Part shown: positions 2,443 to 62,784 of the stretch, piece by piece
Position numbering within the stretch: position 1 is the first letter of the stretch
How the letters are laid out: each line of letters starts with the position of its first letter
Sequence record: PP885688.1
Length of the DNA stretch: 64,000 bases
Reading direction: 5' to 3' (one strand)
Notes under the pieces: generated by a model
What the model saw: the letters and a program-made list of their open reading frames with translations, nothing else
Told to the model about the DNA's origin: nothing
Database searches by the model: none
Position numbers and translations under genes: made by a program

Positions 2443-3239
2443 CTGATCAGTTGGTCAAAACCACACATAAGAAAGCAGTTACTCCACCCTGGGTAACGTG
2501 GTTACCAATTCTCAGCTGAAACTTTACTGAGTACCACGAACGAAAAGCGAAGAAGCGCTAGCGTTCCTATGTGGCTCGAAACCGTGCAATTAAGTGCACT
2601 TATCAAGCTTGATCCTCCCCTAAAATATAAGGAAGCGCTGTAAGTCCACATAAGCATGGCTTTAGATGTTTATAAGTTAGTAACTAAAGTGGGAAAAAAT
2701 TACCGGGTCGCTGCGCAAAATATTCGCTTTTCCACAGGAAGACATTGCAGGGTCTTGCTACACTCGATCTCATAACACCAGAGTAATGCGGTTACGAAGG
2801 GTACACCTCCGGACACGCCAATCGAAGTGAGGAAACATTTTGCGAACAGGAAAGAATCTACCAGTGCTATCCAGGAATGACCGGAAGCATGCCTCAGCAT
2901 TTCAGGCCACCAGGACGCAAGTCTGCGCACCACTCCCCGCATCACCCCTCTACTCCATTCCAGGGTACGGTTCCCCACCAAGGATCGAATGGAAAAAATA
3001 ATTTCAATTTTTTTCATTCAGTAATTGGGTAAGCAGCTTCAGGTTGGGTATTAGCAATTGTCGACAGTAGAAAAAGTCACTTTCGACATGAGGCTCAGCT
3101 CAACCTAACTGGACCAAACAGACAAGTCGTTACAACGGTGAACCGGTTCCGCTCCGATGATAGAAATCATCGAGCCCCAGTCATCACACGCCCTACCTGT
3201 CTCCAGAAACGGAAACCGTAACACTGCAATGGAGGCAAC
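2443..3239. other. AT-richer, palindrome-rich non-coding region (origin/pac/leader candidate)
   Basis: About 800 bp without a credible ORF; palindromes AACTGATCAGTT, ATCAAGCTTGAT, GAACCGGTTC and hairpins GGTAAC/GTTACC, CGATGAT/ATCATCG. Confidence 0.6.
3022..3054 (+). promoter_or_regulatory. Class 1 phage promoter (TAAT-N20-GGGTATTAG)
   Basis: Matches motif repeated 15 times with a 20-nt spacer; upstream of the sigma-like gene. Confidence 0.8.
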
Positions 3240-4220
3240 TTGAACACTGCTATTTTGACCCTGGGCAATGCACCCTCGATCAACGTGAACTTCGATGAAT
3301 CAACCGTAGCTGAACTGAACGCACTATCTGTCATTACAGACGAAGCCATCGCCGAAGTGGATTTTGATGGCGTTGATGATATTTCCGACGACGTTGACAC
3401 ACTCGATGTCGCCCCCGCCGCTGAGCAAGTCTCAAAGCGCGATCCTTACAGCCGCTCCGAAGACGGTCACTTCATTGGCCACGACGGATTCGTCGTTCCC
3501 CTGAACTTCGAAGAGTTCTACGAACGCTACCCCAAGTATGTCAAGGGATTCATCCGCCGCCTCTGGCACCGCGCCAGTGAGGCCGAGATCGAGGACCGCG
3601 AGAGCGAGCTCCACATCTTCCTGATGACTCTTCCCGAAGGATCGAAGTTCCGTGAGCCCGGCTACAACGGCCTCGAAGATGGTTGCACCGACCGCGTCCA
3701 GATCTTCAACCCTGAGGCCCTCGGCTCTTCAGCTCCGCGCTTCTTCCACTACATCAATACCTGCCTGACGCGCCACTTCTACTCTCTCGCGAAGAAGGCT
3801 GCCTCGAACCCGATCCGCCGCTACAACACGCTGAGCCTCTACTCCCCCGATGGTCAGGGACAGATGATCGACGAAGACTACATCTACACGATGACCAGCG
3901 AACAGGCGAACGCCGGTGTGAACTACGATCAGGTGATTCAGGACGGCGTCTTCGTCAGCCAGTACATCGCGTTTGTCGAGGAGCACAACCCCGAGCTGAT
4001 CCCGGTCATCAACGCGATTCAGGCCTTCGAGACCTACGTGGAGGCGATGAACAATCTCGGCATGACTGAGAAGATGTTTATTCGCGCCCGCAACCGTCTC
4101 GTCGTGCTTCACTCGGCATTCGACAAAGGTGTAAATCCCCCGCGCCAGCGTAAGGTTTATCGCGCTCGTGCGGTTGCGGAGAGCACCAAAATTTCTTCAG
4201 AAAATCTCGTCGCAGTATAA
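3240..4220 (+). CDS. Phage-encoded sigma-70-family (ECF-like) factor
   Basis: Region-2-like FEEFYERYPKYVKGFIRR...EIEDRESELHIFL...FFHYINTCLTRHF; region-4-like HTH YVEAMNNLGMTEKMFIRARNRL; GGAGG SD with TTG start. Confidence 0.6.
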   Translation: MNTAILTLGNAPSINVNFDESTVAELNALSVITDEAIAEVDFDGVDDISDDVDTLDVAPAAEQVSKRDPYSRSEDGHFIGHDGFVVPLNFEEFYERYPKYVKGFIRRLWHRASEAEIEDRESELHIFLMTLPEGSKFREPGYNGLEDGCTDRVQIFNPEALGSSAPRFFHYINTCLTRHFYSLAKKAASNPIRRYNTLSLYSPDGQGQMIDEDYIYTMTSEQANAGVNYDQVIQDGVFVSQYIAFVEEHNPELIPVINAIQAFETYVEAMNNLGMTEKMFIRARNRLVVLHSAFDKGVNPPRQRKVYRARAVAESTKISSENLVAV

Positions 4221-4248
4221 GGGTAAGCGGTCGGTTTTTGAGTATTAG
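4216..4248 (+). promoter_or_regulatory. Class 1 promoter (TATA-N20-GAGTATTAG), leaderless ATG 5 nt downstream
   Basis: Motif match; ATG at 4254 has no SD. Confidence 0.75.
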
Positions 4249-4253
4249 ATCTC

Positions 4254-4928
4254 ATGCAAGGTGAGATCGAATACGTAGACGATAACGACTTCGGAGTACA
4301 AGAAGTAGATTTCAACCGCGAGGTGGCGCGGGATCTTTATCGGGCGGGGTTCGGGTCGGCAGACCTCCTCGCCCGGTGGGATCGAATCAAGACCGAGATC
4401 CGGTTCGAGGATGTAGTCGAGCAGGTTCTGGGGTTCACCGATCCAGTCATTCGCTGCCCCTTCCACGGCGGCAAATCCTTCACACTCTACCGGCGCACCA
4501 ACGATGCCTACTGCTACGGATGCCCTCCCGGCAAAGGCTACTACGACGCAGTCCGCCTGATCGCCTCGCTGAATGGGTACACCACCTCCCAGGCCTGCAC
4601 ATGGCTCGAAAAGCAATACGACCTTCCTCCGCTTGAGAACGTAGCGGACGATGAAGACGAAGACGGGGACGACGAGGATGACACCACTCTCGAGACTCTC
4701 AACTACTCCGATCTGGTAGAGCCCTACATCGCACGTGCTGCCTCCGAGTTCCTGAAGAATCCCGAGCCGGGACTTGCACGCAAGTACATCCAGATCTATT
4801 TCGACAACCTGCCCGACAAGAAGACCGACCTCAACTCTGAAGAGGGTTTGAAGCTGGCCGTTCCGCTCGCGTGCGTTCTCGGTTCCGAAGCCATTGAAGC
4901 AATCAAGATAAAGAGGTTCGGTAAATGA
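4254..4928 (+). CDS. CHC2 zinc-finger protein (primase zinc-binding domain)
   Basis: CPFH...YCYGC motif typical of the DnaG ZBD; no TOPRIM domain. Confidence 0.75.
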   Translation: MQGEIEYVDDNDFGVQEVDFNREVARDLYRAGFGSADLLARWDRIKTEIRFEDVVEQVLGFTDPVIRCPFHGGKSFTLYRRTNDAYCYGCPPGKGYYDAVRLIASLNGYTTSQACTWLEKQYDLPPLENVADDEDEDGDDEDDTTLETLNYSDLVEPYIARAASEFLKNPEPGLARKYIQIYFDNLPDKKTDLNSEEGLKLAVPLACVLGSEAIEAIKIKRFGK

Positions 4929-7900: not shown

Positions 7901-9196
7901 CGCGTCTCGGTCAACGTGCCGCTGCAGGGTCTGGCCGGTGAGTTCATGCGTATGACACTCAACCGCGTCCGTCACTGGGCCACCAATGGTGAGTACCTCG
8001 TGCAGTCCGTCCTCCGGATGCATGGTTCAGTTCACGACGAGCTGGATTATGCCGTGAAGAATCCCTACGTGCCCTTCGTGGTGCCACGCATCACTCGCTT
8101 GATGAAGCTGCGCAAGATGCACGCGAATCGCAAGTGGCCCGTCGGAATCGAAGCCGATACCGAGTACGGTCGTTCGTGGGACGTGTCCTATCACCTCACC
8201 GGCGACGATGGACACAAGCCATCGGGCTGGACTGACATCAAGGGACTCGAAGACTACATCCCTCACGAGTTCGCACCGGAGGCCGTGGAGAAGCTGATCC
8301 GCGCGATCCTCTCCGAGAAGGAAACCGCGCGTGCGAAGGCCGATGCCTTCCTCAAGGAGAACCTGCACGAGCGGGCCTACACAGCCGTCTGGCACGCCTT
8401 CTGGAGCGAGGACAAGAACAAGGTCAAGAGTGCGGTCACCAACGAAGCTGTGGTGCGTAAGCAGCTCATCGCGGCCCTGCAGCTGCATGAGTACTGGATG
8501 ATCGACGCGGTTCCAGATGGTGAAGATGCGTCGATGGAGACGATGGAACAGTACGAGGCCCGCCGTGGCCTCACTCCAGCCGATCGCGGCTACATGCCTG
8601 AGGGTGGATGGCTGCACTCGGTGCCGCTTGACCGTGTCCGCCGCAAGCCTCTTCCGATCCTTGGCGAAGCACCGCCGGAGCCGGTTGAGACCGAGCCTCT
8701 CGTCCCCCAGGTGGATGAAGTGGGTCAGGCCTCGATGTTCTATGACGACATCCCTGAGCCCGAGCCAACTCCTGAGCCTGTTGCGGTGAATGTGACGGTC
8801 GAGGTGCGTGTTGTTCAGAACGCAGCGACGCCAGCGCCGACACCGGCCCCGCAACCCGAGGCTGACTACGACGATGTGCTGATGCCTGCACCGAAGAAGC
8901 GGAATCCGACACCAGCATCGACGCCGGTAGTGGAGGAGGCTGCTCCCGTAACCGTCGCGGTGCCCAGTGTGCCGCCGCCACCGAAGCCGATCGCACGCCC
9001 GGCCTCGCTCAACGGTGTGCCCGTGCTTCGCGACATGGATAAGGCTGAGATGGCGCGGTTCGCACAGGTAATGGGCAAGGGATTTGGAGAAAAGGACCTA
9101 CGCGTTGTTTGGAATGGGGAGCTTTACACCCTGACCGGCTATGCCTACACCGAGATCCCGGCAGAGTACCTCGCCGAGGAGTTGGTCTATGCCTGA
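4925..9196 (+). CDS. polA: Family A DNA polymerase with 3'-5' exonuclease, large insertions and C-terminal extension
   Basis: ExoI DTET, ExoII YNAKFD, ExoIII YAAAD; motif A SDYSNIEMR, motif B RSLAKIINFALLYG, motif C VHDEL. Confidence 0.93.
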   Translation: MSTTPDLFESQPEFTLTAPEIQPKKKKAAPVYDISMENISLAGLTHVVRKKRKPGAPRVKKDRSLRTLFRAKLKELDIERLKKPWMAKKSFQNLTTGELLKEYVDKVLADRSSWKQPYLNAEENPNAEFMPVIAVDTETHGLDTRVMVDFELVKDYDTGKEICIPIYEVNIEIAGVCLCHDGKKGVYIPIHHEDGNNVPIEIVRDELQRLFDVSHLVFYNAKFDREVMRQTLAIKFRDYPYFEDVQVLQFAVDPKADLDDDTFTGGGEGLKGLSKTKLGMDQIELSEIGKVQAEVELTAEELEAERLRPRWPKLKKRDVRFCAKCGDAAVHVRTQLVKTDEGEQLVETPECTKPSCLTMVKYKPRSRRMQYVPFTWIPTEIALWYAAADAICTWLLWEGKVEQERKLAFRIADGTQCENHHEGPRVCARFKGHNGPCERAMGMREEAQSRKLVHRIDGNLIDSITWMERQRFIVDTPAHARLTKWHAKASVERKNRLREIANRHGWQEMTTDEDDVIESSIFNVDSTSIDLPKLLFQIKGMTPTKYTDTGKASCDAEAISDLLKQHPHDEFLLALTDYKEYVSLHPEKLSWDPRDKSARIYLKQATTAGGRLAASGGKFHRDGGVSMNIQAIKSVGGNWWVKGDVLVPDYVNEEDVIPHEEHELDPSVFQEVKKDEIMDVAGQVLSPDHPAYAESATTMGFQLRGDKWVRKAPGILNNHIANYLGYSICLVPKCTTCAREHGILIGESKLDANQIINLRALFIAEEGWTFLTSDYSNIEMRVAANISGEPEFIKEFLEGSGDFHTLTASKVFPEFNDPNTSKARKKELRSLAKIINFALLYGGTQFTIYENMRKIDTNITMKDTKKMVDNYWDGVPVFDQWCKGMQKIARELMTCTTATNRIVKFESAMSSLGIEKPTQIQMDNYFSWLRLRKKFRELEEIAKARLVTGDETPEEEKAQARGIKEHMDVLWNDRDSGVRNASDYNRFMSKIQRVSVNVPLQGLAGEFMRMTLNRVRHWATNGEYLVQSVLRMHGSVHDELDYAVKNPYVPFVVPRITRLMKLRKMHANRKWPVGIEADTEYGRSWDVSYHLTGDDGHKPSGWTDIKGLEDYIPHEFAPEAVEKLIRAILSEKETARAKADAFLKENLHERAYTAVWHAFWSEDKNKVKSAVTNEAVVRKQLIAALQLHEYWMIDAVPDGEDASMETMEQYEARRGLTPADRGYMPEGGWLHSVPLDRVRRKPLPILGEAPPEPVETEPLVPQVDEVGQASMFYDDIPEPEPTPEPVAVNVTVEVRVVQNAATPAPTPAPQPEADYDDVLMPAPKKRNPTPASTPVVEEAAPVTVAVPSVPPPPKPIARPASLNGVPVLRDMDKAEMARFAQVMGKGFGEKDLRVVWNGELYTLTGYAYTEIPAEYLAEELVYA

Positions 9197-9899
9197 GCGT
9201 CGCGCACGGTTTGCTTTCGAGATGGACAAGAAGGTTACGGTCACCAACAAACGTAACCTGGCCCGTCTTGCCTCCCGCCAGGTCTACGATTCCCTCGCTT
9301 ACGCGCAACGGACCCTCCTCCGCCTGGAGGAATCGGTTCGTTGGATGGCCCACCTGAATCAGGTGGAAGAGCGCCTGCTCCGCATGGGCATTCTTGCGGA
9401 CAAGGACGGCGATCCCGAAGAGAAACGTCTTCGCGCCGCCGCCTTCGAGGCTCTTATGGTTGCCCGGAAGGCCGTCACCACACTCCGCGACCACAAGTCA
9501 GAGATCGCCACGCAGATGGAGGAGGACTTTGATCCGTTCCTCCGCTTATCTGGTCAGCCAAAGGTTGCCAAGAAGCCCGAACCGCCGAAGAAAGCGACAA
9601 CGTTGCAGGAGCAGATGCAACCGCTGGGCGATCCCGCGTCGAAGTGGCAGCCTAAGGCCCCTCCACCAGCTCCCGCCGCATCCAAACCCGCGCCGGTTCA
9701 GGTCAAGCCTGCGCCAGTACCCGCCCCCAAGGCTCCCGCAGCTGCCCCGGCACCTCCGGCCAAGCCCAACCCCATGAAGCTGAAGCTGAATAGTCTTCTT
9801 CTGGCCAAGGCTCGGGCCGAAATCACCGCCCGCGCTAAGGAGAATGCTGAAAACGAGCTATCAGGTCCCTCCTTAGGGACGGTAACTGATGGCAAATAG
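9189..9899 (+). CDS. Hypothetical protein (coiled coil plus Pro/Lys-rich linker)
   Basis: ATG overlaps polA stop; genome-like codon usage. Confidence 0.7.
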   Translation: MPERRARFAFEMDKKVTVTNKRNLARLASRQVYDSLAYAQRTLLRLEESVRWMAHLNQVEERLLRMGILADKDGDPEEKRLRAAAFEALMVARKAVTTLRDHKSEIATQMEEDFDPFLRLSGQPKVAKKPEPPKKATTLQEQMQPLGDPASKWQPKAPPPAPAASKPAPVQVKPAPVPAPKAPAAAPAPPAKPNPMKLKLNSLLLAKARAEITARAKENAENELSGPSLGTVTDGK

Positions 9900-12336
9900 G
9901 CACAAGAACAGACCGGCATCGAAGAAGCCTGCAACCAAGCCTGCGAATACCCCAAAGGCAACCAAGCAGGAGAAGTTCTTCTCCGCCGGACGCTACACGA
10001 CCGTGGATGACAACGGGCAGGTGAACCATAACCTGGCTTCGCTGACTCGCATGGCCGCCGCCCGCCGCGCCCGCCAGACCAAGACCGCCGGACTCTTTGA
10101 AGACGGCAACCTTGGACCCTCAAACATCGCCGATTCCAATAACATCGGCTACTACTCCTATCAGTTCCCGGTTGACGCGCTGGAGATGCCAGCCTCCCGT
10201 GCTGAGGAGCTGGAGTTCTATCGCCTCGCCTACACCCGCGACCCAATCGTAGCTCGCGCCATCGACCTGCACACCGAACTTCCGCTCTCGAAGATGAAGC
10301 TGGAGAAGTCGAAGTGTTCGGTCGAATCGTTCTCGGACTATGTGTTCGATTACTTCCAGCGTCTGGTCAACGATACCCGATTCTTTTCTGAGCTGATTCA
10401 GGCAACCCGCGAGTACCACACCGTGGGAGAGGCATTCCTGTTCATCGAGCAGCCAGAGCACTACATGAATTTGAAGCTGAGCCCGACGACCGCCAAGGCG
10501 CTCAAGCGTGGCCGTGGCTTCCAGGCTGGTGTTAGCCCCATGACCGAAGCCGCCAATGGCGACCTAGTGGGTCAGGACATCCTTCCGGACTTCATTACCG
10601 CCCGTGGTAAACAGTCCTCGCTGAACGCGAAGGCGAAGGTCCAGGCGATGCAGCTGAAGTTCGCCGATGCCGGTGTCAGCTTCTCGGAAGACGAAGACCC
10701 CGATGACGTGCAGCGCGTGATTGTCCGCCGCCGTGCCAAGCTCTCCAAGCTGCTCAAGAAGCAGATCCGTGACCTCCGTGTTGCGGCGCTCGTAGAAGAG
10801 AGTATCAAGAAGGAAGCCGCAGCCAAGTTTGCGGCGCTGAAGGTTGCGGCCCCAGGTGATGAGCCTGCGCCTGCAGCTGACGCGCCTGCCCCCGACGCCG
10901 CGCCCGACGCCGGAGCCGTTGATGCTGGTGCTCCTGATGCCGGTGTGGATGGTGCTGAGGGTGCAGACGGCGGTCTCGACAATCTCGAGGCTGGCGGCGA
11001 TCTCGGTGGCGCTGACTTCGGTGGTGGCGGTGGTTTCGGAGGCGGTGGTGGCGGCGGAGCAACGATCCCGGGCGACATGGCCGAGGCTGCGGATGCTGCT
11101 GTCACAACAGTCGAGACAGCCAAGCGCGATCGCGAGATCAACGACCTCAAGCGTTACATCCACCTGTTGGAGCGCAAGAAGGAACTGCTCGAAGAGCTCA
11201 AGGACCTGGTCGAGAAGCGTCGTCTGGAGAAGGAGATCTTCTCGCACGTGGTCAACGAGGACTACGAAGGCTTCGACCGCATTCAGATCCTCCAGCCCGA
11301 GCGCATCACGATCACGAACGAAAACGGCGAAGAGCCGATGATCACCTACAAGCCGAGCGACGGCGAGAAGATGGGCTACCTCGAAGACGATGAGGTTCCA
11401 CAGGCGACTAAGGACATGCTGGAAGAGCAGGGTCTGATCCCTCTCAACACCAATCCTTTCGCTGGCTCCTATGTTCTCCACTTCGCGCGTAAGAAGTCCG
11501 GCTACGAGCTCCACGGGCGTTCGGCGCTGCAGTCCTGCATGCGTTCGATCATCTACCGTGAGAAGCTGCGCCAGGTACAGACCACACTCGCCAGCCGCAA
11601 CATGACGCCGAAGACGCTGATCACGGCCCCCGGTACCTCTGAGGTCCAGATCGCTCAGCTCCGCGCTCACGCCGACGAAGCGAAGTCCGATCCGGATTAC
11701 ACGATCGTTACAAACTACGACGTGACCTGGAACGAGATCGACTCCCAGTCGCGTCTGCTCAACCTCTCGGACGAGTGGCAGCACACCAACTCGAACCTCG
11801 CCATCGGCCTCGGCTTCTCGCCCGAGATCCTGATCGGTGAAGGCATGTACGGCAACAACCGCATTCAGCTCGACATGATGGGCGTGACCTACACCCAGTT
11901 CCGCGAAGAGCTGTCGGACATGATCGAGAACAAGATCTTCAAACCGATTGCGATGCTCAAGGGTTTCTATGAGAACGACAACTACGGTCGTCCTCGTTGG
12001 ATCTACCCCAAGATCAGCTTCGGTGCGCTCGCTCTGCGGGACTCGAACGACCTCTACGAGATGCTCTTCAATCTCTACTCGAAGGGTTCGCTGCCGGTCT
12101 CCTCGATCTACGAACTCCTCGGCCTCGATGCAGAGACGGTATCGCGTCAGCTCGAAGATGACCTGTTCTCGGTACGCGACTCGAAGTTCAACGAAGCTCT
12201 CGGCTCGACCTACAACAACATCGGCGCAGAGCTGATCGCCAAGACCGACATCGTCAACCGTCTGGCGAAGAGCATGAACCTGAAAGAAGAAGTTCCGGAT
12301 CCCAACGCGATGGAAGGTTCCGGGGAGGGTATGTAA
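9889..12336 (+). CDS. Portal protein with low-complexity insertion
   Basis: YTRDPIVARAIDLHTELP, HFARKKSGYELHGRSALQS and LAIGLGFSPEILIGEG segments typical of phage portals. Confidence 0.75.
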   Translation: MANRHKNRPASKKPATKPANTPKATKQEKFFSAGRYTTVDDNGQVNHNLASLTRMAAARRARQTKTAGLFEDGNLGPSNIADSNNIGYYSYQFPVDALEMPASRAEELEFYRLAYTRDPIVARAIDLHTELPLSKMKLEKSKCSVESFSDYVFDYFQRLVNDTRFFSELIQATREYHTVGEAFLFIEQPEHYMNLKLSPTTAKALKRGRGFQAGVSPMTEAANGDLVGQDILPDFITARGKQSSLNAKAKVQAMQLKFADAGVSFSEDEDPDDVQRVIVRRRAKLSKLLKKQIRDLRVAALVEESIKKEAAAKFAALKVAAPGDEPAPAADAPAPDAAPDAGAVDAGAPDAGVDGAEGADGGLDNLEAGGDLGGADFGGGGGFGGGGGGGATIPGDMAEAADAAVTTVETAKRDREINDLKRYIHLLERKKELLEELKDLVEKRRLEKEIFSHVVNEDYEGFDRIQILQPERITITNENGEEPMITYKPSDGEKMGYLEDDEVPQATKDMLEEQGLIPLNTNPFAGSYVLHFARKKSGYELHGRSALQSCMRSIIYREKLRQVQTTLASRNMTPKTLITAPGTSEVQIAQLRAHADEAKSDPDYTIVTNYDVTWNEIDSQSRLLNLSDEWQHTNSNLAIGLGFSPEILIGEGMYGNNRIQLDMMGVTYTQFREELSDMIENKIFKPIAMLKGFYENDNYGRPRWIYPKISFGALALRDSNDLYEMLFNLYSKGSLPVSSIYELLGLDAETVSRQLEDDLFSVRDSKFNEALGSTYNNIGAELIAKTDIVNRLAKSMNLKEEVPDPNAMEGSGEGM

Positions 12337-15162: not shown

Positions 15163-15168
15163 ACTCAG

Positions 15169-15201
15169 TATTGGGTGAAGGGGCCGCGAGGAGGGTATTA
15201 G
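15169..15201 (+). promoter_or_regulatory. Class 1 promoter (TATT-N20-GGGTATTAG)
   Basis: Motif match. Confidence 0.8.
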
Positions 15202-15226
15202 CTCCTGTTGAGGTCCGTTTATCCGC

Positions 15227-16255
15227 ATGCAAGTTTCTAAAGGTTCGCTCTCCAAGATCATCAAGACTATCGACGCCTTCGACCTCACCGGCTCCCCGTT
15301 CGTGGGCATGCAGTGGGGTGAGGCTGGACCTCTGTTTCACCGCGCCGGTCCGGCTGGCTACGTCGAATCGATCGGGTACAAGCCCGGCCCTCCCTCACTC
15401 GTGATCTCAATCACGCATCTGAAGGAGACCCTCGCCCGCTTCGACGATGACATGATCGACATGAGTCAGGATCGCAGCGGCGTGCTGGTGCTAGAAAGCG
15501 TCGGCAGCGCCTTCGGGACGACTCTGCATGTCCACACGGTACGTTCGAACGTGACCTGGGCCCAGACACACAACCCCGGAGAGAGAACGGTACGGCTTGA
15601 GCCGACCGCCTTCGCCGGGATCAACACCTCACCCTTCAAGCTGGCCTCCGCGCCGGTCCTCCGCCAGGGCAAGCTGATGCTCGCCACCGACTACGGCATC
15701 ATCATGCGTTCGCAGGTGCCGGTCGAGGCCTATCCCTATCCGCGCGAGTCCTTCCTGCGCACGATCTCTCCACTGGCGATCGAGGACCTCTTCCTGACCC
15801 AAGCCGGTTACTGGAGTGCCCTCGCTGGCGGCTTCCGCATCATGATCTCCGGCCACCGCACCGGCGATCCTTTCTTCGACATGTACAACCGTGGTGCCGA
15901 GACGCTGGCTGAGATCCCCGCCGCCCGTCTGACCTCCGCTGTGGGCCATGCCGCCGCCATCGCCACCGCCGCCAAGAAGTCCCGCGTCACCTTCGACCCT
16001 ACGCTCGGTCTGGTGGTCGTCGACGGCTACGGCAACGAGGGTAAGTTCGCCCTGGGTACCTCGGCGGCGTGGGAGCGGTTCTCGGTCCCATCCCAGACGG
16101 CCTCCACTCTAGCCGATGTCCTGAAGCAGGGAACCGAGGAGACAGCGCTCCTGCAGCTTGTCGAACCCGGTACCCTGCGCATCACCCGGGGGCTCTGGGA
16201 GGTCTCTTTCAAAATCTTCGCCTCAAATTCATCTCACGACGTTTCTGGTTTGTAG
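15227..16255 (+). CDS. Divergent beta sliding clamp-like protein
   Basis: 342 aa; MQVSKGSLSKII N-terminus and repeated helix/strand pattern resemble DnaN; dnaX present in window. Confidence 0.45.
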   Translation: MQVSKGSLSKIIKTIDAFDLTGSPFVGMQWGEAGPLFHRAGPAGYVESIGYKPGPPSLVISITHLKETLARFDDDMIDMSQDRSGVLVLESVGSAFGTTLHVHTVRSNVTWAQTHNPGERTVRLEPTAFAGINTSPFKLASAPVLRQGKLMLATDYGIIMRSQVPVEAYPYPRESFLRTISPLAIEDLFLTQAGYWSALAGGFRIMISGHRTGDPFFDMYNRGAETLAEIPAARLTSAVGHAAAIATAAKKSRVTFDPTLGLVVVDGYGNEGKFALGTSAAWERFSVPSQTASTLADVLKQGTEETALLQLVEPGTLRITRGLWEVSFKIFASNSSHDVSGL

Positions 16256-16260
16256 GTTGA
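16228..16260 (+). promoter_or_regulatory. Class 2 promoter (TTCATCTCA-N15-GTAGGTTGA)
   Basis: Motif repeated 9 times with a 15-nt spacer. Confidence 0.75.
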
Positions 16261-16278
16261 GAAAGAGAGGCCTACTAA

Positions 16279-18094: not shown

Positions 18095-18121
18095 TTCCTT
18101 CCCTCGATATTGGGGGAAGGG
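18095..18121 (+). repeat. 27-bp direct repeat copy 1 (TTCCTTCCCTCGATATTGGGGGAAGGG)
   Basis: Identical to 18998-19024; forms a hairpin with GATATT in the loop. Confidence 0.9.
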
Positions 18122-18140
18122 ACCCCTGCTTGGGTATTAC
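18108..18140 (+). promoter_or_regulatory. Class 1 promoter (TATT-N20-GGGTATTAC)
   Basis: Motif match. Confidence 0.8.
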
Positions 18141-18162
18141 CTACAGGAATCTTTCTCCCAAT

Positions 18163-18195
18163 TTCATCTTTCGCGGATTTTGGTCCGTAGGTTGA
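18163..18195 (+). promoter_or_regulatory. Class 2 promoter, leaderless ATG 4 nt downstream
   Basis: TTCATCTTT-N15-GTAGGTTGA-GGAT-ATG. Confidence 0.8.
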
Positions 18196-18199
18196 GGAT

Positions 18200-18997: not shown

Positions 18998-19024
18998 TTC
19001 CTTCCCTCGATATTGGGGGAAGGG
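18998..19024 (+). repeat. 27-bp direct repeat copy 2
   Basis: Identical to 18095-18121. Confidence 0.9.
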
Positions 19025-19043
19025 CTCTCAATTTGGGTATTAC
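19011..19043 (+). promoter_or_regulatory. Class 1 promoter (TATT-N20-GGGTATTAC)
   Basis: Motif match. Confidence 0.8.
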
Positions 19044-19046
19044 ATT

Positions 19047-21890: not shown

Positions 21891-22669
21891 TGGTATCGGG
21901 ATACGAGTTTTACAAGGGACCGTGGCAGGACACCGGCTGGCTGGTCAACGCGACGCATGCGTTCTTCACTGAGTATGCTCCGACGAAGAACATCTACGAG
22001 GTCACGAAGGAGAAGATCGTCGAGCGCCGCAAGTGGACTCCGACGCTGTCCTACTATGACACGCACTTCACCCAGATCCTCGAAGAGCTCGGCATCATCT
22101 ACGTCCCCAAGCAGGTGGACCCAGGTCCCGGCGTGCTCTTCCCGATCCCTGACTATCACCAGCGCCTGACCCATGGCAAGATCAACCCCTTCTATGAGCT
22201 GCTCCTCCGCGACCAGCCCGCTAAGTATGGATTCCTAGGCAAGAAAGATGCCTTCCGAGGACCGTCGTGGATGGGCGCGACCGATGAGGTCCTCCGGCTG
22301 ATCGCACGCTACCGTACAGTCATTCTGGTTGAAGGTCCGTATGATCTTCTCGCCTGCCGCCTGCTGTGGCCGAACGCTGCGGTGCTCTCGACCGGCACCA
22401 AGACCATCAACGATATGCATGTGGCGTATCTGCGCATGCTGGGCGTCAAGACGGTCTATCTCCTGTTCGACTATGAGTCTGCGAAGGCTGGTAAGTCCGA
22501 TGGTCAGGGACAGATCGCGATGGAGATCATCCGCAACACCTATGGCCGCACCTCAGGCCTGCGATTCGAGATCGCGAACTGCCCGAACGACGACCCCGCG
22601 ATGTGTCTCGAAGACTACTGGGGCGCTCAGGCTCTGCGCAAAGTTCTCGTAGGAATCTTTCCTCAATAA
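21890..22669 (+). CDS. DnaG-type primase catalytic/TOPRIM domain lacking the zinc-binding domain
   Basis: LFPIPD...KYG, VILVEGPYD, VYLLFDYE TOPRIM motifs. Confidence 0.75.
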   Translation: MVSGYEFYKGPWQDTGWLVNATHAFFTEYAPTKNIYEVTKEKIVERRKWTPTLSYYDTHFTQILEELGIIYVPKQVDPGPGVLFPIPDYHQRLTHGKINPFYELLLRDQPAKYGFLGKKDAFRGPSWMGATDEVLRLIARYRTVILVEGPYDLLACRLLWPNAAVLSTGTKTINDMHVAYLRMLGVKTVYLLFDYESAKAGKSDGQGQIAMEIIRNTYGRTSGLRFEIANCPNDDPAMCLEDYWGAQALRKVLVGIFPQ

Positions 22670-22699
22670 TCCCGGTCGGGCCTGTCGGATGGGTATTAG
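22667..22699 (+). promoter_or_regulatory. Class 1 promoter (TAAT-N20-GGGTATTAG)
   Basis: Motif match; upstream TAAT uses the primase stop codon. Confidence 0.8.
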
Positions 22700-22743
22700 C
22701 TCATGGGGACGCCAAGCGAAACCCCTTGAGAGGAACCTCCTAC

Positions 22744-42239: not shown

Positions 42240-42243
42240 GTAT

Positions 42244-42276
42244 TCAACCTACGGAGCTGGTGAGCCCAAAGATGAC
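42244..42276 (-). promoter_or_regulatory. Class 2 promoter, leaderless
   Basis: GTCATCTTT-N15-GTAGGTTGA-ATAC-ATG; box lies within palindrome CCCAAAG-TCAT-CTTTGGG. Confidence 0.8.
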
Positions 42277-42292
42277 TTTGGGAACGAAATAA

Positions 42293-43883: not shown

Positions 43884-43887
43884 ATCT

Positions 43888-43920
43888 TCAACCTACAAAC
43901 CAAACCCGGCCAAAGATGAA
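43888..43920 (-). promoter_or_regulatory. Class 2 promoter, leaderless
   Basis: TTCATCTTT-N15-GTAGGTTGA-AGAT-ATG. Confidence 0.8.
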
Positions 43921-43930
43921 TTTGGCCGGG
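43897..43930 (-). terminator. Intrinsic terminator after dut, overlapping class 2 promoter
   Basis: CCCGGCCAAA/TTTGGCCGGG 10-bp stem followed by TTTGGTTT. Confidence 0.6.
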
Positions 43931-44391: not shown

Positions 44392-44396
44392 GGTTG

Positions 44397-44429
44397 CTAA
44401 TACTCAAAAGCGAGCCGCTTCCATGAATT
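44397..44429 (-). promoter_or_regulatory. Class 1 promoter (AATT-N20-GAGTATTAG), leaderless dut
   Basis: Motif match; ATG 5 nt downstream. Confidence 0.75.
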
Positions 44430-44451
44430 CGCTTCGAATATTTTCGGCGAG

Positions 44452-44484
44452 AATTCGACCTAGGGCCCCCTCGATGGGTATTAG
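44452..44484 (+). promoter_or_regulatory. Class 1 promoter (AATT-N20-GGGTATTAG), leaderless
   Basis: Motif match; ATG 5 nt downstream; back-to-back with the dut promoter. Confidence 0.8.
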
Positions 44485-44489
44485 CCCAC

Positions 44490-45368: not shown

Positions 45369-45382
45369 AAATCGGCATTTGA

Positions 45383-45415
45383 TATCTCGGTAAGCAGGCC
45401 CTCCATGGGTATTAG
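45383..45415 (+). promoter_or_regulatory. Class 1 promoter (TATC-N20-GGGTATTAG)
   Basis: Motif match. Confidence 0.75.
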
Positions 45416-45434
45416 CCCGTGGAGGGCTTTTCTT
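45398..45434 (+). terminator. Terminator-like hairpin enclosing the class 1 downstream element
   Basis: GCCCTCCATGGGT-ATTA-GCCCGTGGAGGGC followed by TTTTCTT. Confidence 0.6.
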
Positions 45435-46397: not shown

Positions 46398-46419
46398 CCC
46401 TCCCCCTGTGGAAAAACAA

Positions 46420-46452
46420 TAATCACTGTCGCGGCCCTCGGATGGGTATTAC
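46420..46452 (+). promoter_or_regulatory. Class 1 promoter (TAAT-N20-GGGTATTAC)
   Basis: Motif match. Confidence 0.8.
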
Positions 46453-46470
46453 GTATCGAGGGCCACGATT

Positions 46471-50076: not shown

Positions 50077-50082
50077 GCGAGA

Positions 50083-50115
50083 TATACGGTGTAGCGCCTC
50101 CTCGATGGGTATTAG
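50083..50115 (+). promoter_or_regulatory. Class 1 promoter (TATA-N20-GGGTATTAG)
   Basis: Motif match. Confidence 0.8.
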
Positions 50116-50140
50116 CGAAAGACAGACCCGGAGAGCACAC

Positions 50141-51729: not shown

Positions 51730-51741
51730 TTCTGCCCAGTT

Positions 51742-51774
51742 GTCATCTTTGGTTCCCTGAGGTTCGTAGGTTGA
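51742..51774 (+). promoter_or_regulatory. Class 2 promoter
   Basis: GTCATCTTT-N15-GTAGGTTGA; leader carries GGAGG SD. Confidence 0.8.
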
Positions 51775-51790
51775 AACCAGGAGGACCTTT

Positions 51791-52360
51791 ATGCATGCCG
51801 CACCCGAACCCCTTGAGGAGTACCAGGATCTTATGTACGAACATCTGACCAGCGACTACACCATCCGCCAACACCCCAACCCAGTGCTCTATGAGATCGC
51901 TGAACCGATCGCCGAGGATGAGTTCGGCGATGAGCTGTTCGCTCTGGGTGCGCAGATGGTCGCCATCGTGAAGCAACACGACGCCCTCGGTATCGCCGCG
52001 AACCAGATCGGCCTGCTCAAGCGCATCTTCGCCATGGAGTCCACCCTCGGGCCTGTCGTGATCTGCAACCCGGAGCTCACACTGAGCAAAGAGACTGACT
52101 ATAGGGATGAGGGATGCCTGTCCATGCCCGGCGTACAGGAGCAGGTCATCCGCTCCACCAGTCTGCTGATGAAGTTCCGTACTCCGATGGGTGCACCGGC
52201 CTCCATCCAGCTCGAAGGCCTCGACGCGCGTATCGTGCAACACGAAGTCGACCATCTTGACGGAATCAACTTCGTCGACCGCCTCCCGCGCAACCTGAAG
52301 AAGCGTGCGATGAAGTCGTGGGAAGAAAAACTCGCAAAGATCAAAAAATCTGCGGCGTAA
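51791..52360 (+). CDS. def: Peptide deformylase
   Basis: GIAANQIG, EGCLS, QHEVDHLDG. Confidence 0.93.
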   Translation: MHAAPEPLEEYQDLMYEHLTSDYTIRQHPNPVLYEIAEPIAEDEFGDELFALGAQMVAIVKQHDALGIAANQIGLLKRIFAMESTLGPVVICNPELTLSKETDYRDEGCLSMPGVQEQVIRSTSLLMKFRTPMGAPASIQLEGLDARIVQHEVDHLDGINFVDRLPRNLKKRAMKSWEEKLAKIKKSAA

Positions 52361-52361
52361 T

Positions 52362-52394
52362 TTCATCTTTGGACCCTCCAGGTTTGCAGGTTGT
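52362..52394 (+). promoter_or_regulatory. Class 2 promoter variant (TTCATCTTT-N15-GCAGGTTGT)
   Basis: Two mismatches in downstream element. Confidence 0.6.
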
Positions 52395-52433
52395 GGATAG
52401 AGAGATAAATATTTCGGTTTTCCACCGACCACA

Positions 52434-52466
52434 TAAACGGGTAAGTGCCCTTCGCTTGGGTATTGA
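52434..52466 (+). promoter_or_regulatory. Class 1 promoter variant (TAAA-N20-GGGTATTGA)
   Basis: Motif match with mismatch; tandem with class 2. Confidence 0.65.
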
Positions 52467-52504
52467 CCACTGTACGAGCGAAAAGCTCGACCTGGAGGAT
52501 TCAA

Positions 52505-52996: not shown

Positions 52997-53045
52997 CCCG
53001 TGTCCAGAGCCGCCGTCAGCAACCTCCTAAAATTTCCCATTTCAA

Positions 53046-53078
53046 TATTGGGTGCACAGAGTCTCCGAACGGTATTAG
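53046..53078 (+). promoter_or_regulatory. Class 1 promoter (TATT-N20-CGGTATTAG)
   Basis: Motif match. Confidence 0.7.
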
Positions 53079-53128
53079 CCCGCAGGAGACTTTATGAAAA
53101 CCGAAATTCTCAACAACGGGGGTTCGCG

Positions 53129-53499: not shown

Positions 53500-53549
53500 T
53501 GGGGATCGGGCTACGACACTGGGTCGCCGATCCCCATTTTTTCTTCTTT
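53500..53549 (+). terminator. Intrinsic terminator
   Basis: TGGGGATCGG/CCGATCCCCA stem plus T tract. Confidence 0.75.
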
Positions 53550-53554
53550 CGAAA

Positions 53555-53587
53555 GTCATCTTTGGCCCGACGGGCTTTGTAGGTTGA
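53555..53587 (+). promoter_or_regulatory. Class 2 promoter, leaderless
   Basis: AAAGTCATCTTT-N15-GTAGGTTGA-GGAT-ATG. Confidence 0.8.
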
Positions 53588-53591
53588 GGAT

Positions 53592-54734: not shown

Positions 54735-54752
54735 AAGTTTGTTTCGCTGAAA

Positions 54753-54785
54753 GTCATCTTTCGCTTGTTTCACTTTGTAGGTTGA
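54753..54785 (+). promoter_or_regulatory. Class 2 promoter, leaderless
   Basis: AAAGTCATCTTT-N15-GTAGGTTGA-AAAT-ATG. Confidence 0.8.
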
Positions 54786-54789
54786 AAAT

Positions 54790-56434: not shown

Positions 56435-56436
56435 CG

Positions 56437-56888: not shown

Positions 56889-56904
56889 ATTTCTTCCCCC
56901 CAAA

Positions 56905-56937
56905 GTCATCTTTTGCGCATCCGCCTCTGTAGGTTGA
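56905..56937 (+). promoter_or_regulatory. Class 2 promoter
   Basis: AAAGTCATCTTT-N15-GTAGGTTGA; leader carries AAGGAG SD. Confidence 0.8.
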
Positions 56938-56955
56938 GAATAAGGAGCAACAGAG

Positions 56956-60161: not shown

Positions 60162-60166
60162 GTGGG

Positions 60167-60199
60167 GTAATACCGTTCCCGCATGCCCGACCCTGAATA
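60167..60199 (-). promoter_or_regulatory. Class 1 promoter (TATT-N20-CGGTATTAC), leaderless
   Basis: Motif match; ATG 5 nt downstream. Confidence 0.75.
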
Positions 60200-60209
60200 T
60201 CGGTAGGAA

Positions 60210-60531: not shown

Positions 60532-60533
60532 GG

Positions 60534-61102: not shown

Positions 61103-61292
61103 TCACCGGGACGAACATGAACAGTGCGACCCAGAGAGAGCTCGTGGAAAAGTGAACGTGGAGCTTGTGAAACCTGAACACGATATGGATCAGGCTGTTG
61201 CTGAAGAGCATCACCAGGTAGAGGGTCACGTAGCTCACCGTCACGAGGAGGCGAGCTACGGATTTGCCATAGATGAACCGCAGCCCGGCCAC
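61065..61292 (-). CDS. Small two-TM protein
   Basis: Hydrophobic helices; coupled start. Confidence 0.55.
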   Translation of the reverse strand: MAGLRFIYGKSVARLLVTVSYVTLYLVMLFSNSLIHIVFRFHKLHVHFSTSSLWVALFMFVPVIVPYLRRFRRDS

Positions 61293-62053
61293 TACTCGAC
61301 CGGTCCGATAGCGACGCCCGCAGCGACTTTCAGCGCGAGACGTTTCTTGAAGTGCTCGACCGGCAGTGAGAGAACCCGCTCGATCTCGTTCTTCTGGATC
61401 TCTTCGAGGTCGAGGCCATAGGACTCCGCCAGAGCCAGGAGCGTCATGCTGAGGCCTGCGAGCTCCTGCGGGACCTCGCCGACAGGACGACCGTAGACGT
61501 AGAGAGCGAGCTCGATGACCTTCTCAAAAGGGAGACCACAGGCCTGGGCCAGTTCGATCGCCTCTTCGAGGACGCGGCGGCTGCGCTCGGACCCATTCGT
61601 GAAGGACGCCTCACCGAAGCAACGCAGAACCCAGTCACCAATGATCTGTTGAATGGACATCGACTTCGGCCACTCTTCCATCAGGATCTGGTTGACCAGA
61701 CGCGCACCAGCTTCGAGTGACTCGACCTGGGTCAGCTTGTCATGCAGGATTGCGGTGGGCAGCAGACCGCTCAGATCGCCGACGACAACCACGCGGGTGC
61801 CCTGGGCGAGAGCTGCGCCGATCTCCAGAAGGCCGCCCTTGAGGACTTCGCCTTCATTGACAAGCACGAACACGACGGCTGCGGATGCGGCCTCTTTCAG
61901 ATAGCGCGGCCAGGCCTCTGCGAAGTTGATCTCTTCCGGGCCTCCGTCGTCGATCCACGAGGAGATGATGGGAAAGCTGTGCTCACGCATCTTGCGCCAC
62001 AACGGGGCGTGCGTGATCTTCGAAACGACGTAGACTCCCTGCTTACCTGCCAC
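61292..62053 (-). CDS. Nucleoside deoxyribosyltransferase-like N-domain fused to MazG-like NTP-PPase
   Basis: VYVVS...GGLLEIGAALAQG..VVVVG; VLEEAIEL...QELAG..MTLLALA..YGLDL. Confidence 0.6.
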   Translation of the reverse strand: MAGKQGVYVVSKITHAPLWRKMREHSFPIISSWIDDGGPEEINFAEAWPRYLKEAASAAVVFVLVNEGEVLKGGLLEIGAALAQGTRVVVVGDLSGLLPTAILHDKLTQVESLEAGARLVNQILMEEWPKSMSIQQIIGDWVLRCFGEASFTNGSERSRRVLEEAIELAQACGLPFEKVIELALYVYGRPVGEVPQELAGLSMTLLALAESYGLDLEEIQKNEIERVLSLPVEHFKKRLALKVAAGVAIGPVE

Positions 62054-62696
62054 TTGGAACCTCCAGAAACTTGATGATTGGTGCGTTGTTGATCACGTAC
62101 GCCTCGTTCATCGCGGCGCAGTTTACGAACTCTGTGTTGGGGAAGATGGTGGTGCGCTGCTCGCCATAACTTCCGTGGATATGGCCGAAGATGTGGAGCC
62201 GAGGCTTGACGCGGTTGATCGCAAGCAGCAGCTCATCGCATCCCAGGTGCTCTCCACCGGGCCGTAGCTGGTCACGGAGGCCGAGAGCAGGCCCATGGGT
62301 GATCAGCACGTCGGTGTCGTTGGGAATGCGGTCCCAGAAGCGGCGGATAGGTAGACCACGCGGCACGTTGAAGGCCCAGTTCATGAACTCGGGCTGTTGG
62401 GGGGAACCGTAGAACTTGATGCCCTCGATCTCGACGCCGGAGTTCTCCAGATAGATCGCACTGGTGAGGAAGCTGCGGGCGTACGAGTTCTGTCTCTCAA
62501 AGAGAATGTCGTGGTTGCCCGCGATGACGATCTTGTGGCGGTGGGGCTGACTGGCAAGCCACTGGTTGAAGTCCCAGATCTCGTCCGCCACTCGACCGGA
62601 GAGCATGAAGTCTCCGGCGTGAATGAGAACGTCGCCTTCCGGGATTTGAGTCAGGCGGTGAGACCCGTGTGTGTCGCTGATGCAAACGATGCGCAT
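62043..62696 (-). CDS. Metallophosphoesterase (MPPED/239FB-like)
   Basis: ISDTH, HAGD, IAGNHD, LITHGP, HIFGHIH. Confidence 0.9.
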   Translation of the reverse strand: MRIVCISDTHGSHRLTQIPEGDVLIHAGDFMLSGRVADEIWDFNQWLASQPHRHKIVIAGNHDILFERQNSYARSFLTSAIYLENSGVEIEGIKFYGSPQQPEFMNWAFNVPRGLPIRRFWDRIPNDTDVLITHGPALGLRDQLRPGGEHLGCDELLLAINRVKPRLHIFGHIHGSYGEQRTTIFPNTEFVNCAAMNEAYVINNAPIIKFLEVPSGR

Positions 62697-62751
62697 GGTG
62701 AGACCTCGTGCTGGAGGTCGGCTGCACCAAAACGCATCGGCCTCTCCATGG

Positions 62752-62784
62752 CTAATACCCACGCGAGAGGCCGATCCTGGATTA
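62752..62784 (-). promoter_or_regulatory. Class 1 promoter (TAAT-N20-GGGTATTAG)
   Basis: Motif match. Confidence 0.8.

Follow-up and report, generated by a model that had tools for sequence, protein, structure and literature searches.

Cascades of phage-encoded sigma factors that act on the core RNA polymerase of the host have been described for the Bacillus phage SPO1 (gp28, then gp33/gp34), the coliphage phiEco32 (the sigma factor gp36 together with gp79) and its relative 7-11 (gp47), and promoters of the phiEco32 and 7-11 type carry a sharply conserved, phage-specific consensus with transcription starting 6-9 bp downstream (PMC8948821). Here we describe a candidate system of this kind in the Tunturiibacter phage Tunturi_5 (PP885688.1), a jumbo myovirus of Finnish tundra soil origin with a 308,711-bp circular genome, isolated on Tunturiibacter psychrotolerans (Acidobacteriota). 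The stretch on which the analysis is built, hereafter the window, comprises bases 1-64000 of this record and holds 80 annotated coding sequences. It contains three sets of bipartite motifs, referred to as classes 1, 2 and 3, together with gp3, which encodes a candidate sigma factor, and gp25, which encodes a NusG-like protein. To our knowledge, nothing is known of the transcription signals of Acidobacteriota phages, and little of those that their hosts, bacteria abundant in soil, use.

The system that we propose resembles those of SPO1, phiEco32 and 7-11 in that the primary sigma factor of the host would serve early genes and a phage sigma factor, encoded among the middle genes near replication genes, would direct later classes. 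It differs in that its motifs are unrelated to the tAATGTAtA consensus of phiEco32 and the GTAAtg-N16-aCTA consensus of 7-11, in that gp3 has no detectable sequence similarity to known sigma factors, and in that a single genome of 309 kb combines two unrelated sigma-type genes, a NusG-like gene and three promoter classes. T4 provides a second parallel, as it also runs a three-tier programme on the host polymerase, with a middle class in which a displaced upstream box accompanies replication genes and a late class made up of structural genes. However, we identified no homologue of MotA, AsiA, gp55 or gp33 in Tunturi_5, and its late motif is bipartite, whereas that of T4 is a single TATAAATA element. 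The Tunturi_5 system thus appears to work like known sigma cascades, and what is new are the motifs, a sigma-like protein that cannot be recognised by sequence, a conserved partner with a NusG fold and the frequency of leaderless starts.

GenBank attaches the label 'RNA polymerase sigma factor' to two Tunturi_5 genes, gp3 (3240-4220) and gp211 (151918-152616), and labels gp25 (25259-26293) 'transcription antiterminator'. No RNA polymerase is annotated anywhere in the record, and the transcription system therefore depends on the host core polymerase. A preliminary description of the window had portrayed a self-contained transcription programme; with gp211 outside the window, sites spread over the genome and the core enzyme supplied by the host, that portrayal is incomplete. 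We propose that Tunturi_5 redirects the host core enzyme via three promoter classes distributed over its 309-kb genome. Class 2 would be read with host sigma-A and act early, driving small unknown and accessory genes. Class 1 would be a middle class in need of a phage factor, with gp3 as the leading candidate, and would drive replication, recombination, nucleotide-metabolism and tRNA genes in addition to both sigma genes and the NusG-like gene. Class 3 would be late, plausibly read by gp211, an extracytoplasmic function (ECF) sigma factor, and would drive tail-fibre, protease and virion genes. Finally, gp25 would be made from a class 1 promoter and probably rides the elongating polymerase and modifies pausing or termination on phage DNA. 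The data establish the motifs with their statistics, geometry, gene partition and conservation, as well as the folds of gp25 and gp211; promoter function (very likely), temporal order and each of the factor-to-class assignments are inferred from them. The three-class cascade on host core as a whole, with its order and these assignments included, is in our judgement moderately probable.

To locate the motifs genome-wide, we built position weight matrices (PWMs) from the window sites, iterated them once and scanned the whole record locus by locus with reversed sequence as the null; chance counts in the window come from 300 second-order Markov simulations. Class 1 (ATAWTC, 22 nt, TATTAG) has 15 sites in the window and 64 in the genome. 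Its core, GGTATTA, occurs 12 times in the window compared to 0.6 expected (simulation maximum 4), with an upstream box, RATAWT, 21 nt before it, and adding the variants GAGTATTA and GGTATTG yields the 15 sites in a single register. All 64 sites score at or above the threshold of 10 bits, which the null does not reach (maximum 9.0); every one of them has the direction of the gene that follows, and 59 are located outside genes. When the two boxes were scored independently at spacers from -4 to +4, 50 of 52 pairs had the native spacing, and the null gave 0. Class 2 (CATCTT, 17 nt, TAGGTT; in full, tTCATCTTTgg-N15-GTAGGTTGA) has 9 sites in the window and 36 in the genome. Exact GTAGGTTGA occurs 8 times in the window compared to 0.5 expected, joined by one GCAGGTTGT variant; the upstream box TCATCTTT sits 15 nt upstream of it, and the bipartite pattern TCATCT-N17-G[TC]AGGTTG, found 9 times in the window, was absent from the simulations. 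The null maximum for this matrix is -1.1, all 34 scored pairs have the native spacing (null 0) and 35 of 36 sites are co-oriented, the single exception being a gene-caller error (the annotated gp266 starts at that ATG).

These results agree with the preliminary description in the number of copies on the two strands (15 and 9), in the first and last class 1 coordinates, in the placement of all 24 window sites between genes or at gene 3' ends and in the direction of the downstream gene, and in the fixed spacers; the genome-wide scan that it had proposed extends them to 64 and 36 sites. By contrast, a scan of positions 1-20 kb for canonical TTGACA/TATAAT promoters gave 7 sites compared to 4.9 +/- 2.3 expected, none of which is co-oriented with a gene, and this lack of enrichment and orientation leaves the class motifs as the sole promoter candidates. 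Based on position upstream of genes, co-orientation, bipartite structure with fixed spacing, the start-codon offset and conservation described below, we consider that classes 1 and 2 are very probably promoters, as had been proposed.

The two classes differ in how they relate to a primary sigma factor. In its -10 box and spacer, class 2 conforms to what sigma-A recognises, with TAGGTT, a TANNNT box, invariant in most sites and CATCTT 17 bp upstream. Class 1, for which we place ATAWTC at about -39 to -34 and TGGGTATTAGC over the -10 region, has neither a TANNNT box nor a 16-18 bp spacer: read as TATTAG, its -10 box has G or C at -7, read as GTATTA it has T at -11, and the upstream box lies 21-22 bp off. 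Because class 1 thereby lacks the T at -7 that primary sigma factors need, it most likely requires a phage factor.

A striking regularity in both classes is the distance to the start codon. In class 1, 16 of 64 sites have an ATG exactly 6 nt past GTATTA, and in class 2, 12 of 36 sites have one at exactly the same distance past TAGGTT, compared to about 1.0 and 0.6, respectively, expected at any single offset. Nine of these ATGs fall in the window and all nine are GenBank starts (gp4, gp47, gp48 and gp72 for class 1; gp11, gp41, gp46, gp61 and gp62 for class 2), and the remaining sites of the two classes have leaders of 15-30 nt with GAGG-type ribosome-binding sites. Since transcription usually starts 6-7 nt after the -10 hexamer, the fixed offset suggests that these mRNAs begin at the A of the ATG, which implies that leaderless mRNAs would arise from 28 of the 100 promoters in the two classes. 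A survey of leaderless genes in bacteria reports TANNNT about 12 nt upstream of the start codon as their signal and, for the three Acidobacteria genomes that it covers, a leaderless share of 9.7-19.4% (PMC3160421). The first T of the class 2 TAGGTT box lies 12 nt before the ATG and thus reproduces exactly the signature of leaderless genes in high-GC bacteria. The Tunturi_5 signal differs from theirs in being set within much longer conserved promoter boxes, and in that the same offset is also found with a box, that of class 1, that is not TANNNT.

The alternative that the motifs are terminator or processing hairpins with conserved loops, or repressor operators, draws on the base pairing around them. 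TATTAG is enclosed by at least 6 uninterrupted bp in 16 of 64 class 1 sites (at least 8 bp in 9), five of these 16 hairpins are followed by T-runs, and the class 2 upstream box forms a small palindrome, AAAG-TCAT-CTTT (p = 0.015). However, the hairpins are a minority and only modestly enriched over shuffled flanks (p = 0.03), there is no fixed-register covariation across sites for a conserved hairpin (maximum z = 3), and an Rfam search of the window returned 0 matches. Moreover, co-orientation, fixed bipartite spacing, the 6-nt ATG offset and the existence of divergent pairs in divergent intergenic regions fit promoters and do not fit terminators, and we regard this alternative as very improbable. 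Terminator-like sites in the scan of 1-20 kb numbered 11 compared to 14.8 expected. The 16 class 1 hairpins, of which three lie in the window (45377-45430, 46414-46460 and 62749-62790), are strong and GC-rich, and the 3' arm of 10 of them contains a GGAG, GAGG or AGGA ribosome-binding-site sequence, often the GGAGG of the next gene. As a hypothesis only, terminator and promoter may overlap in the class 1 hairpin, or the ribosome-binding site may be unmasked by use of the promoter: in a transcript that comes from further upstream the hairpin would fold, and this could terminate the transcript or mask its ribosome-binding site, and transcripts begun at the class 1 promoter would lack the 5' arm.

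Gene content separates the two classes across the genome, as the preliminary description had reported for the window. Going by the product names in the record, 35 of 64 class 1 sites are followed first by a gene of named function, compared to 5 of 36 class 2 sites (Fisher p = 5e-5), and the median length of the first gene is 240 aa compared to 159 aa (p = 0.01). The five named genes behind class 2 encode a methyltransferase, a deformylase, a ligase, a PAPS-reductase-family protein and RecT. Class 1 precedes gp3, the primase/polymerase, the clamp, the exonuclease/clamp loader/gp25 run, dUTPase and helicases, as well as deaminase, thyX, SSB, RuvC, ribonucleotide reductase, RtcB and tRNAs. Two class 1 sites lie directly before tRNA genes (239994-240035 and 253357-253398), and the 43 tRNAs of the phage consequently appear to belong to the expression class of the replication genes. 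gp3, the gp212-gp211 operon and gp25 are all behind class 1 sites, so that both sigma genes and the NusG-like gene share a class. This limits which factor can read which class, a constraint that the preliminary description had not taken into account. From gene content and the fit of class 2 to the host-type signature, we somewhat favour a cascade in which class 2 acts first, class 1 second and class 3 last.

The structural-gene blocks of Tunturi_5 (about 174-212 kb and 261-308 kb) have almost no class 1 or class 2 sites. An expectation-maximisation search of 107 upstream regions without either motif returned a third one, class 3 (GACTWC, 11-12 nt, TAGG), which is found ahead of many structural genes genome-wide, and most of its sites have this placement. 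The pattern [GA]ACT[AT][CTG]-N11/12-TAG[GA] occurs 25 times in the genome compared to 8.65 +/- 2.8 in simulated sequence (maximum 15); intergenic sequence makes up ~10% of the genome and contains 16 of the 25 matches, 14 of these 16 are co-oriented, and two further matches lie 11-15 nt before the next start codon. The corresponding two-box matrix gives 24 sites of at least 16 bits compared to 7 in the null, and 12 of at least 20 bits. Strong sites precede the tail-fibre genes gp28, gp247 and gp341, the genes for virion protein gp329, head protease gp331 and tail protein gp336, and also gp321, gp339, gp343 and gp347, often with TAGG just 8-13 nt ahead of the ATG; examples outside the window are 194352-194372, 261471-261492 and 276394-276414. 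Like the other two classes, class 3 is upstream, co-oriented and bipartite with fixed spacing, and these sites are probably promoters. One of them (153691-153711) heads the operon gp213-gp212-gp211, which has a class 1 site inside it, and through it gp211 could reinforce its own expression. The preliminary description was correct that neither class 1 nor class 2 stands directly before portal or fibre genes, and a temporal cascade remains the natural reading of these data; what it lacked were the third class and gp211. Its suggestion that transcription from class 1 promoters extends into structural genes, through read-through or antitermination, is weakened by the class 3 sites before the fibre operon (28025-28046) and other structural genes, which indicate that late genes probably have promoters of their own and need not depend on read-through. 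At least the fibre genes would thus have their own late-type signal, and possibly also the portal gene gp7 (phrog_16240, E = 3e-24), which is preceded by a variant of the motif.

We next examined relatives of Tunturi_5 in 20-kb pieces of a 307-kb Logan contig (SRR21229958_20219; pieces L008 and L169), a 303-kb NCBI contig (JASCQV010010426.1; L170) and a 272-kb contig (ERZ25039521 contig_2112; L010), together with the IMG/VR contigs L150 and L151. In such related contigs, a search of which the preliminary description had also proposed, -10 boxes recur at orthologous positions. The 307-kb contig is syntenic with the window, and class 1 -10 boxes precede the orthologues of gp3, primase, clamp and exonuclease in this contig and L170, as well as the primase orthologues of L150 and L151; the divergent pair at 44394-44487 (dUTPase/helicase) is kept in L170. 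For class 2, L169 has a -10 box after the clamp gene, and L010 has a full site. GACT-type boxes precede fibre orthologues in L169 and in a further contig piece, L171, and terminase orthologues in L008, L150 and L151. The -10 boxes are kept even though the gp3 and gp25 orthologues are just 39-64% identical, and upstream boxes are more diverged across relatives than -10 boxes. Among 50,697 deposited phage genomes, Tunturi_5 alone has a gp3 homologue, a gp25 homologue or class-2-like DNA. Exact-pattern scans of IMG/VR for both bipartite motifs returned single matches in AT-rich contigs, none of which reached 20 bits when re-scored and which we attribute to chance.

The two sigma-type proteins differ in how they can be recognised. 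gp211, encoded on the minus strand outside the window, matches Pfam Sigma70_r2 (2.3e-11) and Sigma70_r4_2 (1.5e-5) and aligns with E. coli sigma-E over residues 9-184 (3.4e-19); with region 2 and region 4.2 and without region 3, it is unambiguously an ECF sigma factor by sequence, and it has distant relatives in crAss-like phages among the deposited phage genomes. By contrast, the resemblance of gp3 (plus strand, 326 aa) to sigma factors lies in its AlphaFold model, which comprises helical domains at residues ~70-190 and 229-296 (predicted local distance difference test (pLDDT) scores of 85-96) joined by a disordered linker. In Foldseek searches of the PDB, the top ~20 matches of this model are sigma factors (best E 0.046), led by the sigma chain, chain F, of the phiEco32 gp79-dependent open complex, which is formed with the phage sigma factor gp36, and followed by ECF sigma factors. 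At the level of single domains, it matches sigma-E region 2 bound to -10 DNA (template modelling (TM) score 0.5) and sigma4 (TM 0.59), and in the viral fold library BFVD its matches are mostly phage sigma factors (best E 0.005). We consider that gp3 is probably a sigma-family protein. Its family is large, with 427 clusters in an exhaustive profile search and 34 homologues at 43-66% identity in a word-indexed search. One homologue lies beside a phage-type integrase and tryptophan-biosynthesis genes on a 648-kb contig that resembles a bacterial chromosome (L011, ERZ25039540 contig_22563, 8474-10960), and the gp3 family may therefore occur in integrated elements too.

Several observations weigh against the reading set out above, beginning with the identity of gp3. 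All of its fold E-values are above 1e-3 (none of the PDB matches is at or below this value), and by sequence it has no Pfam match at E <= 0.01, no PHROG match and, searched alone and with two family profiles, no match in the PDB. Regions 2 and 4, which define membership of the sigma-70 family, are not detectable in its sequence. Direct comparison of gp3 with gp211 reveals no sequence similarity, the hhalign probability of 4%, with an acidic region-2.1/2.2-like stretch aligned, being not significant, and a sequence bridge from gp3 to sigma factors, sought by profile searches and hhalign, likewise failed to reach significance. Of the sigma-70-like reading frame previously described at 3240-4220, the frame therefore exists, and its label has no sequence support and rests on weak fold matches. 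Class 1 could instead be read by a sigma-A holoenzyme remodelled by a phage activator that binds ATAWTC, comparable to T4 MotA/AsiA, with gp3 being some other helical protein that binds DNA or polymerase. In keeping with this possibility, the sequence-level sigma signal in the whole 427-cluster family amounts at most to two faint matches to Sigma70_r2 (2 of 10 distant members, sub-threshold, E ~0.03), the upstream box of class 1 is displaced ~4 bp upstream from the canonical -35 position, as an activator site might be, and it is this box that diverges among relatives when the -10 box stays. However, the top ~20 PDB matches of gp3 and most of its top viral ones are sigma factors that share its arrangement of two domains, sigma-A needs a T at -7 that is missing from the class 1 -10 box, and the class-2-driven genes of the window include no candidate activator (a Pfam search of class-2-driven genes for a class 1 regulator gave 0 matches). 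We find this arrangement as a whole distinctly unlikely.

Other difficulties concern which factor reads which class. The gp3 gene is itself behind class 1, so that, if gp3 reads this class, the first gp3 needs another source. The -35 region of class 2 (CATCTT/TTCATC) agrees with TTGACA at only ~3 of 6 positions, class 2 has 9 + 9 near-invariant bases, above the usual demand of a primary sigma factor, and no class 2 sites turned up in Tunturi_4, a phage without sigma genes that infects the same host genus. Relatives with gp3 homologues carry traces of all three classes, and co-occurrence thus does not tell which factor reads which class. With a null maximum of 21.5 bits, the model for class 3 is weaker than those of classes 1 and 2. 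The first box of class 3 (GGACTTC, GAACTTC) appears to resemble the GGAACTT-type -35 element of RpoE-like ECF sigma factors. Furthermore, the paper describing Tunturi_5 never uses the words promoter, sigma, antiterminator, RNA polymerase or antitermination (PMC11924767). Some of these points would be accommodated if class 1 were read by the host from the start, by sigma-A alone or with an injected factor, and switched on the sigma genes, with gp3 then reading class 2 and gp211 class 3. With both sigma genes and the NusG-like gene behind class 1, this arrangement has no bootstrapping problem; the long near-invariant boxes of class 2 resemble the site of a dedicated factor more than a degenerate host promoter, class 2 is absent from a phage, Tunturi_4, that must use host promoters, and across relatives it is the -10 boxes of class 1 that are better conserved. 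On the other hand, it would have sigma-A read a -10 box without TANNNT and an upstream box 21-22 bp away in place of the 16-18 bp of primary sigma factors, whereas class 2 fits TANNNT, the 17-bp spacer and the leaderless signature of the host, and drives the small, unknown and accessory genes that are typical of an early profile. We therefore judge this arrangement to be rather unlikely and retain the assignment of class 2 to sigma-A and of class 1 to a phage factor.

Three further ideas were tried and set aside. One was that gp3 expression could start from a class-2-like element that overlaps the class 1 site before this gene, but the element was below threshold at every spacing. Tunturi_4 contains 26 TAGGTTG (70 TAGGTT) words and was considered as a proxy for host promoters, but these words are antisense to coding regions and no -35 box accompanies them. 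Lastly, a reading of co-occurrence by which gp3 reads neither class had used a PWM scan of 19 loci that found classes 1 and 2 only in close relatives; motif words later showed all three classes in diverged form in the syntenic relatives.

The NusG-like reading frame at 25259-26293 that had been noted earlier is present, on the plus strand, and its fold assignment holds up. The AlphaFold model of gp25 (pLDDT 87) gives 33 PDB matches at E <= 1e-3 in Foldseek, with probability 1.00, and all of them are NusG, Spt5 or RfaH (best 5.2e-8); residues ~1-180 form the NGN and KOW domains of the NusG/Spt5 fold, and a helical C-terminal domain at ~190-325 has no structural match. By sequence, the signal stays below the Pfam NusG and KOW thresholds (KOW_Spt5 at E ~0.03 only), a PDB profile search finds NusG at E = 0.024, and PF02357 NusG is matched in 2 of 34 gp25 homologues (best E 0.0012). 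More than 150 full-length homologues exist, and their length of 320-450 aa indicates that the C-terminal part varies in size. In Tunturi_5, the class 1 site at 22661-22702 heads a gene run that includes clamp loader gp24 and gp25, and in every context fetched (L166, L168, L169, L170 and L171, phage-like contigs of 92-463 kb) the gp25 homologue adjoins a clamp-loader (DNA_pol3_delta2) gene or lies a few genes downstream of it. This neighbourhood recalls the link between replication and transcription in T4, where gp55/gp33 act with the sliding clamp, and the connection to the clamp is positional only. Like the NusG paralogues RfaH, LoaP and UpxY and like Spt5, gp25 combines NGN and KOW domains, and its best matches are NusG, Spt5 and RfaH in elongation complexes. 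It differs from these paralogues in being phage-encoded, in being about twice as long as NusG with an unmatched helical C-terminal domain of ~140 residues, and in that no ops-like recruitment element was identified for it. Elongation complexes are the most plausible target of gp25. A likeness between the -10 box of class 2 and the RfaH ops element is probably a coincidence; the box lies upstream of the predicted start. No paper naming NusG together with jumbo phages turned up in a literature search.

More broadly, Tunturi_5 offers ~120 sharply defined promoter candidates that can be sorted into classes, along with a NusG-like gene and two sigma-type genes, and it can be cultured with its host in the laboratory. 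Expression profiling could therefore test the predicted cascade, leaderless starts and factor assignments directly. The families of gp3, with its 427 clusters, and gp25, with more than 150 homologues on contigs reaching 463 kb, are found widely among huge phages from metagenomes, so that annotating them in Tunturi_5 would inform the annotation of many huge phages that have not been cultured. Genetic tools for Acidobacteria, a need raised by the authors who described the phage (PMC11924767), could also draw on the promoter motifs as expression signals. We tentatively raise a wider possibility, which we think doubtful as a whole: gp3 would found a large sigma-type family, invisible to Pfam, that reads a -10 box without T at -7, often placed at the tip of a hairpin that masks the next ribosome-binding site, and that together with a NusG-like factor of huge soil phages and leaderless mRNAs constitutes a dedicated transcription-translation apparatus on host core, with Tunturi_5 as its sole cultured example. 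The individual sites of the window are collected in Table 1.

Table 1. Candidate promoter sites of the three classes in the window (positions 1-64000 of PP885688.1)
Class	Position	Strand	Context
Class 1	3016-3057	+	182 nt upstream of gp3; PWM score 41.7 bits; counterpart before gp3 orthologue in L008
Class 1	4210-4251	+	Primase gp4 ATG 6 nt past GTATTA; orthologous box before primase in L008, L150 and L151
Class 1	15163-15204	+	Before clamp gene gp9; orthologous box in L169
Class 1	18102-18143	+	Before gp11; tandem with class 2 site at 18155
Class 1	19005-19046	+	Before ATPase gp14; PWM site
Class 1	22661-22702	+	Before exonuclease gp23; orthologous box in L170 and L169
Class 1	44394-44435	-	dUTPase (gp47) ATG 6 nt past box; half of divergent pair
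Class 1	44446-44487	+	Helicase gp48 ATG 6 nt past box; other half of divergent pair
Class 1	45377-45418	+	Before dCMP deaminase; TATTAG forms loop of 12-bp hairpin followed by T-run; minimum free energy -33.6 kcal/mol
Class 1	46414-46455	+	Before thyX; box at hairpin apex
Class 1	50077-50118	+	Before gp55; PWM site
Class 1	52428-52469	+	GGTATTG variant; before gp59; tandem with class 2 site at 52354
Class 1	53040-53081	+	Before gp60; PWM site
Class 1	60164-60205	-	MarR-like gp72 ATG 6 nt past box
Class 1	62749-62790	-	Before metallophosphoesterase gp78; box at hairpin apex
Class 2	16220-16263	+	Before DNA methyltransferase gp10; overlaps gp9 3' end; -10 box likewise placed in L169
Class 2	18155-18198	+	gp11 ATG 6 nt past TAGGTT
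Class 2	42241-42284	-	gp41 ATG 6 nt past TAGGTT
Class 2	43885-43928	-	gp46 ATG 6 nt past TAGGTT
Class 2	51734-51777	+	Before peptide deformylase gp58; leader with Shine-Dalgarno sequence
Class 2	52354-52397	+	GCAGGTTGT variant; upstream of gp59
Class 2	53547-53590	+	DNA ligase gp61 ATG (annotated start 53592) 6 nt past TAGGTT
Class 2	54745-54788	+	PAPS-reductase-family gp62 ATG 6 nt past TAGGTT
Class 2	56897-56940	+	Before gp68; leader with Shine-Dalgarno sequence
Class 3	28025-28046	+	GACTAT-N12-TAGG, 8 nt before tail-fibre gp28 ATG (operon gp28-gp29); 23.1 bits
Class 3	63432-63452	-	AACTAT-N11-TAGG, 15 nt before gp79 ATG; 21.8 bits
Class-3-like (weak, uncertain)	1937-1957	+	Before gp2; TAAG in place of TAGG; 14.4 bits, within null range
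Class-3-like variant (suggestive)	9846-9870	+	AGCTATC-N11-TAGGGA, ending 9 nt before portal gp7 ATG; below PWM threshold

Two genes of the window have tandem promoters of mixed class, which stand in opposite order: class 1 then class 2 before gp11 (18102-18198), and class 2 then class 1 before gp59 (52354-52469). Several class-2-driven open reading frames (ORFs) begin with near-identical codons, ATG-(A/G)GC-(A/G)C-AC, at 18200, 53592 and 54790 in the window and at 66735, 81690 and 170125 in the genome; the one at ~81.69 kb is a mini-ORF of 7 codons that resembles the start of the PAPS-reductase-family gene. These shared first codons could reflect a conserved initially transcribed region or duplicated promoter cassettes. 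Upstream of gp3 lies an unusually long non-coding gap of 797 bp (2443-3239), which is AT-rich right before the class 1 site and has no Rfam match; its sole long ORF (2700-3017, minus strand) has low third-position GC. Finally, the 430 bp that precede terL, the terminase gene at window position 1, on the circular genome (308282-308711) contain strong GC-rich hairpins, one of them followed by a T-run, and a class-3-like box, AACTTC-N11-ACAG, near the terminase start.

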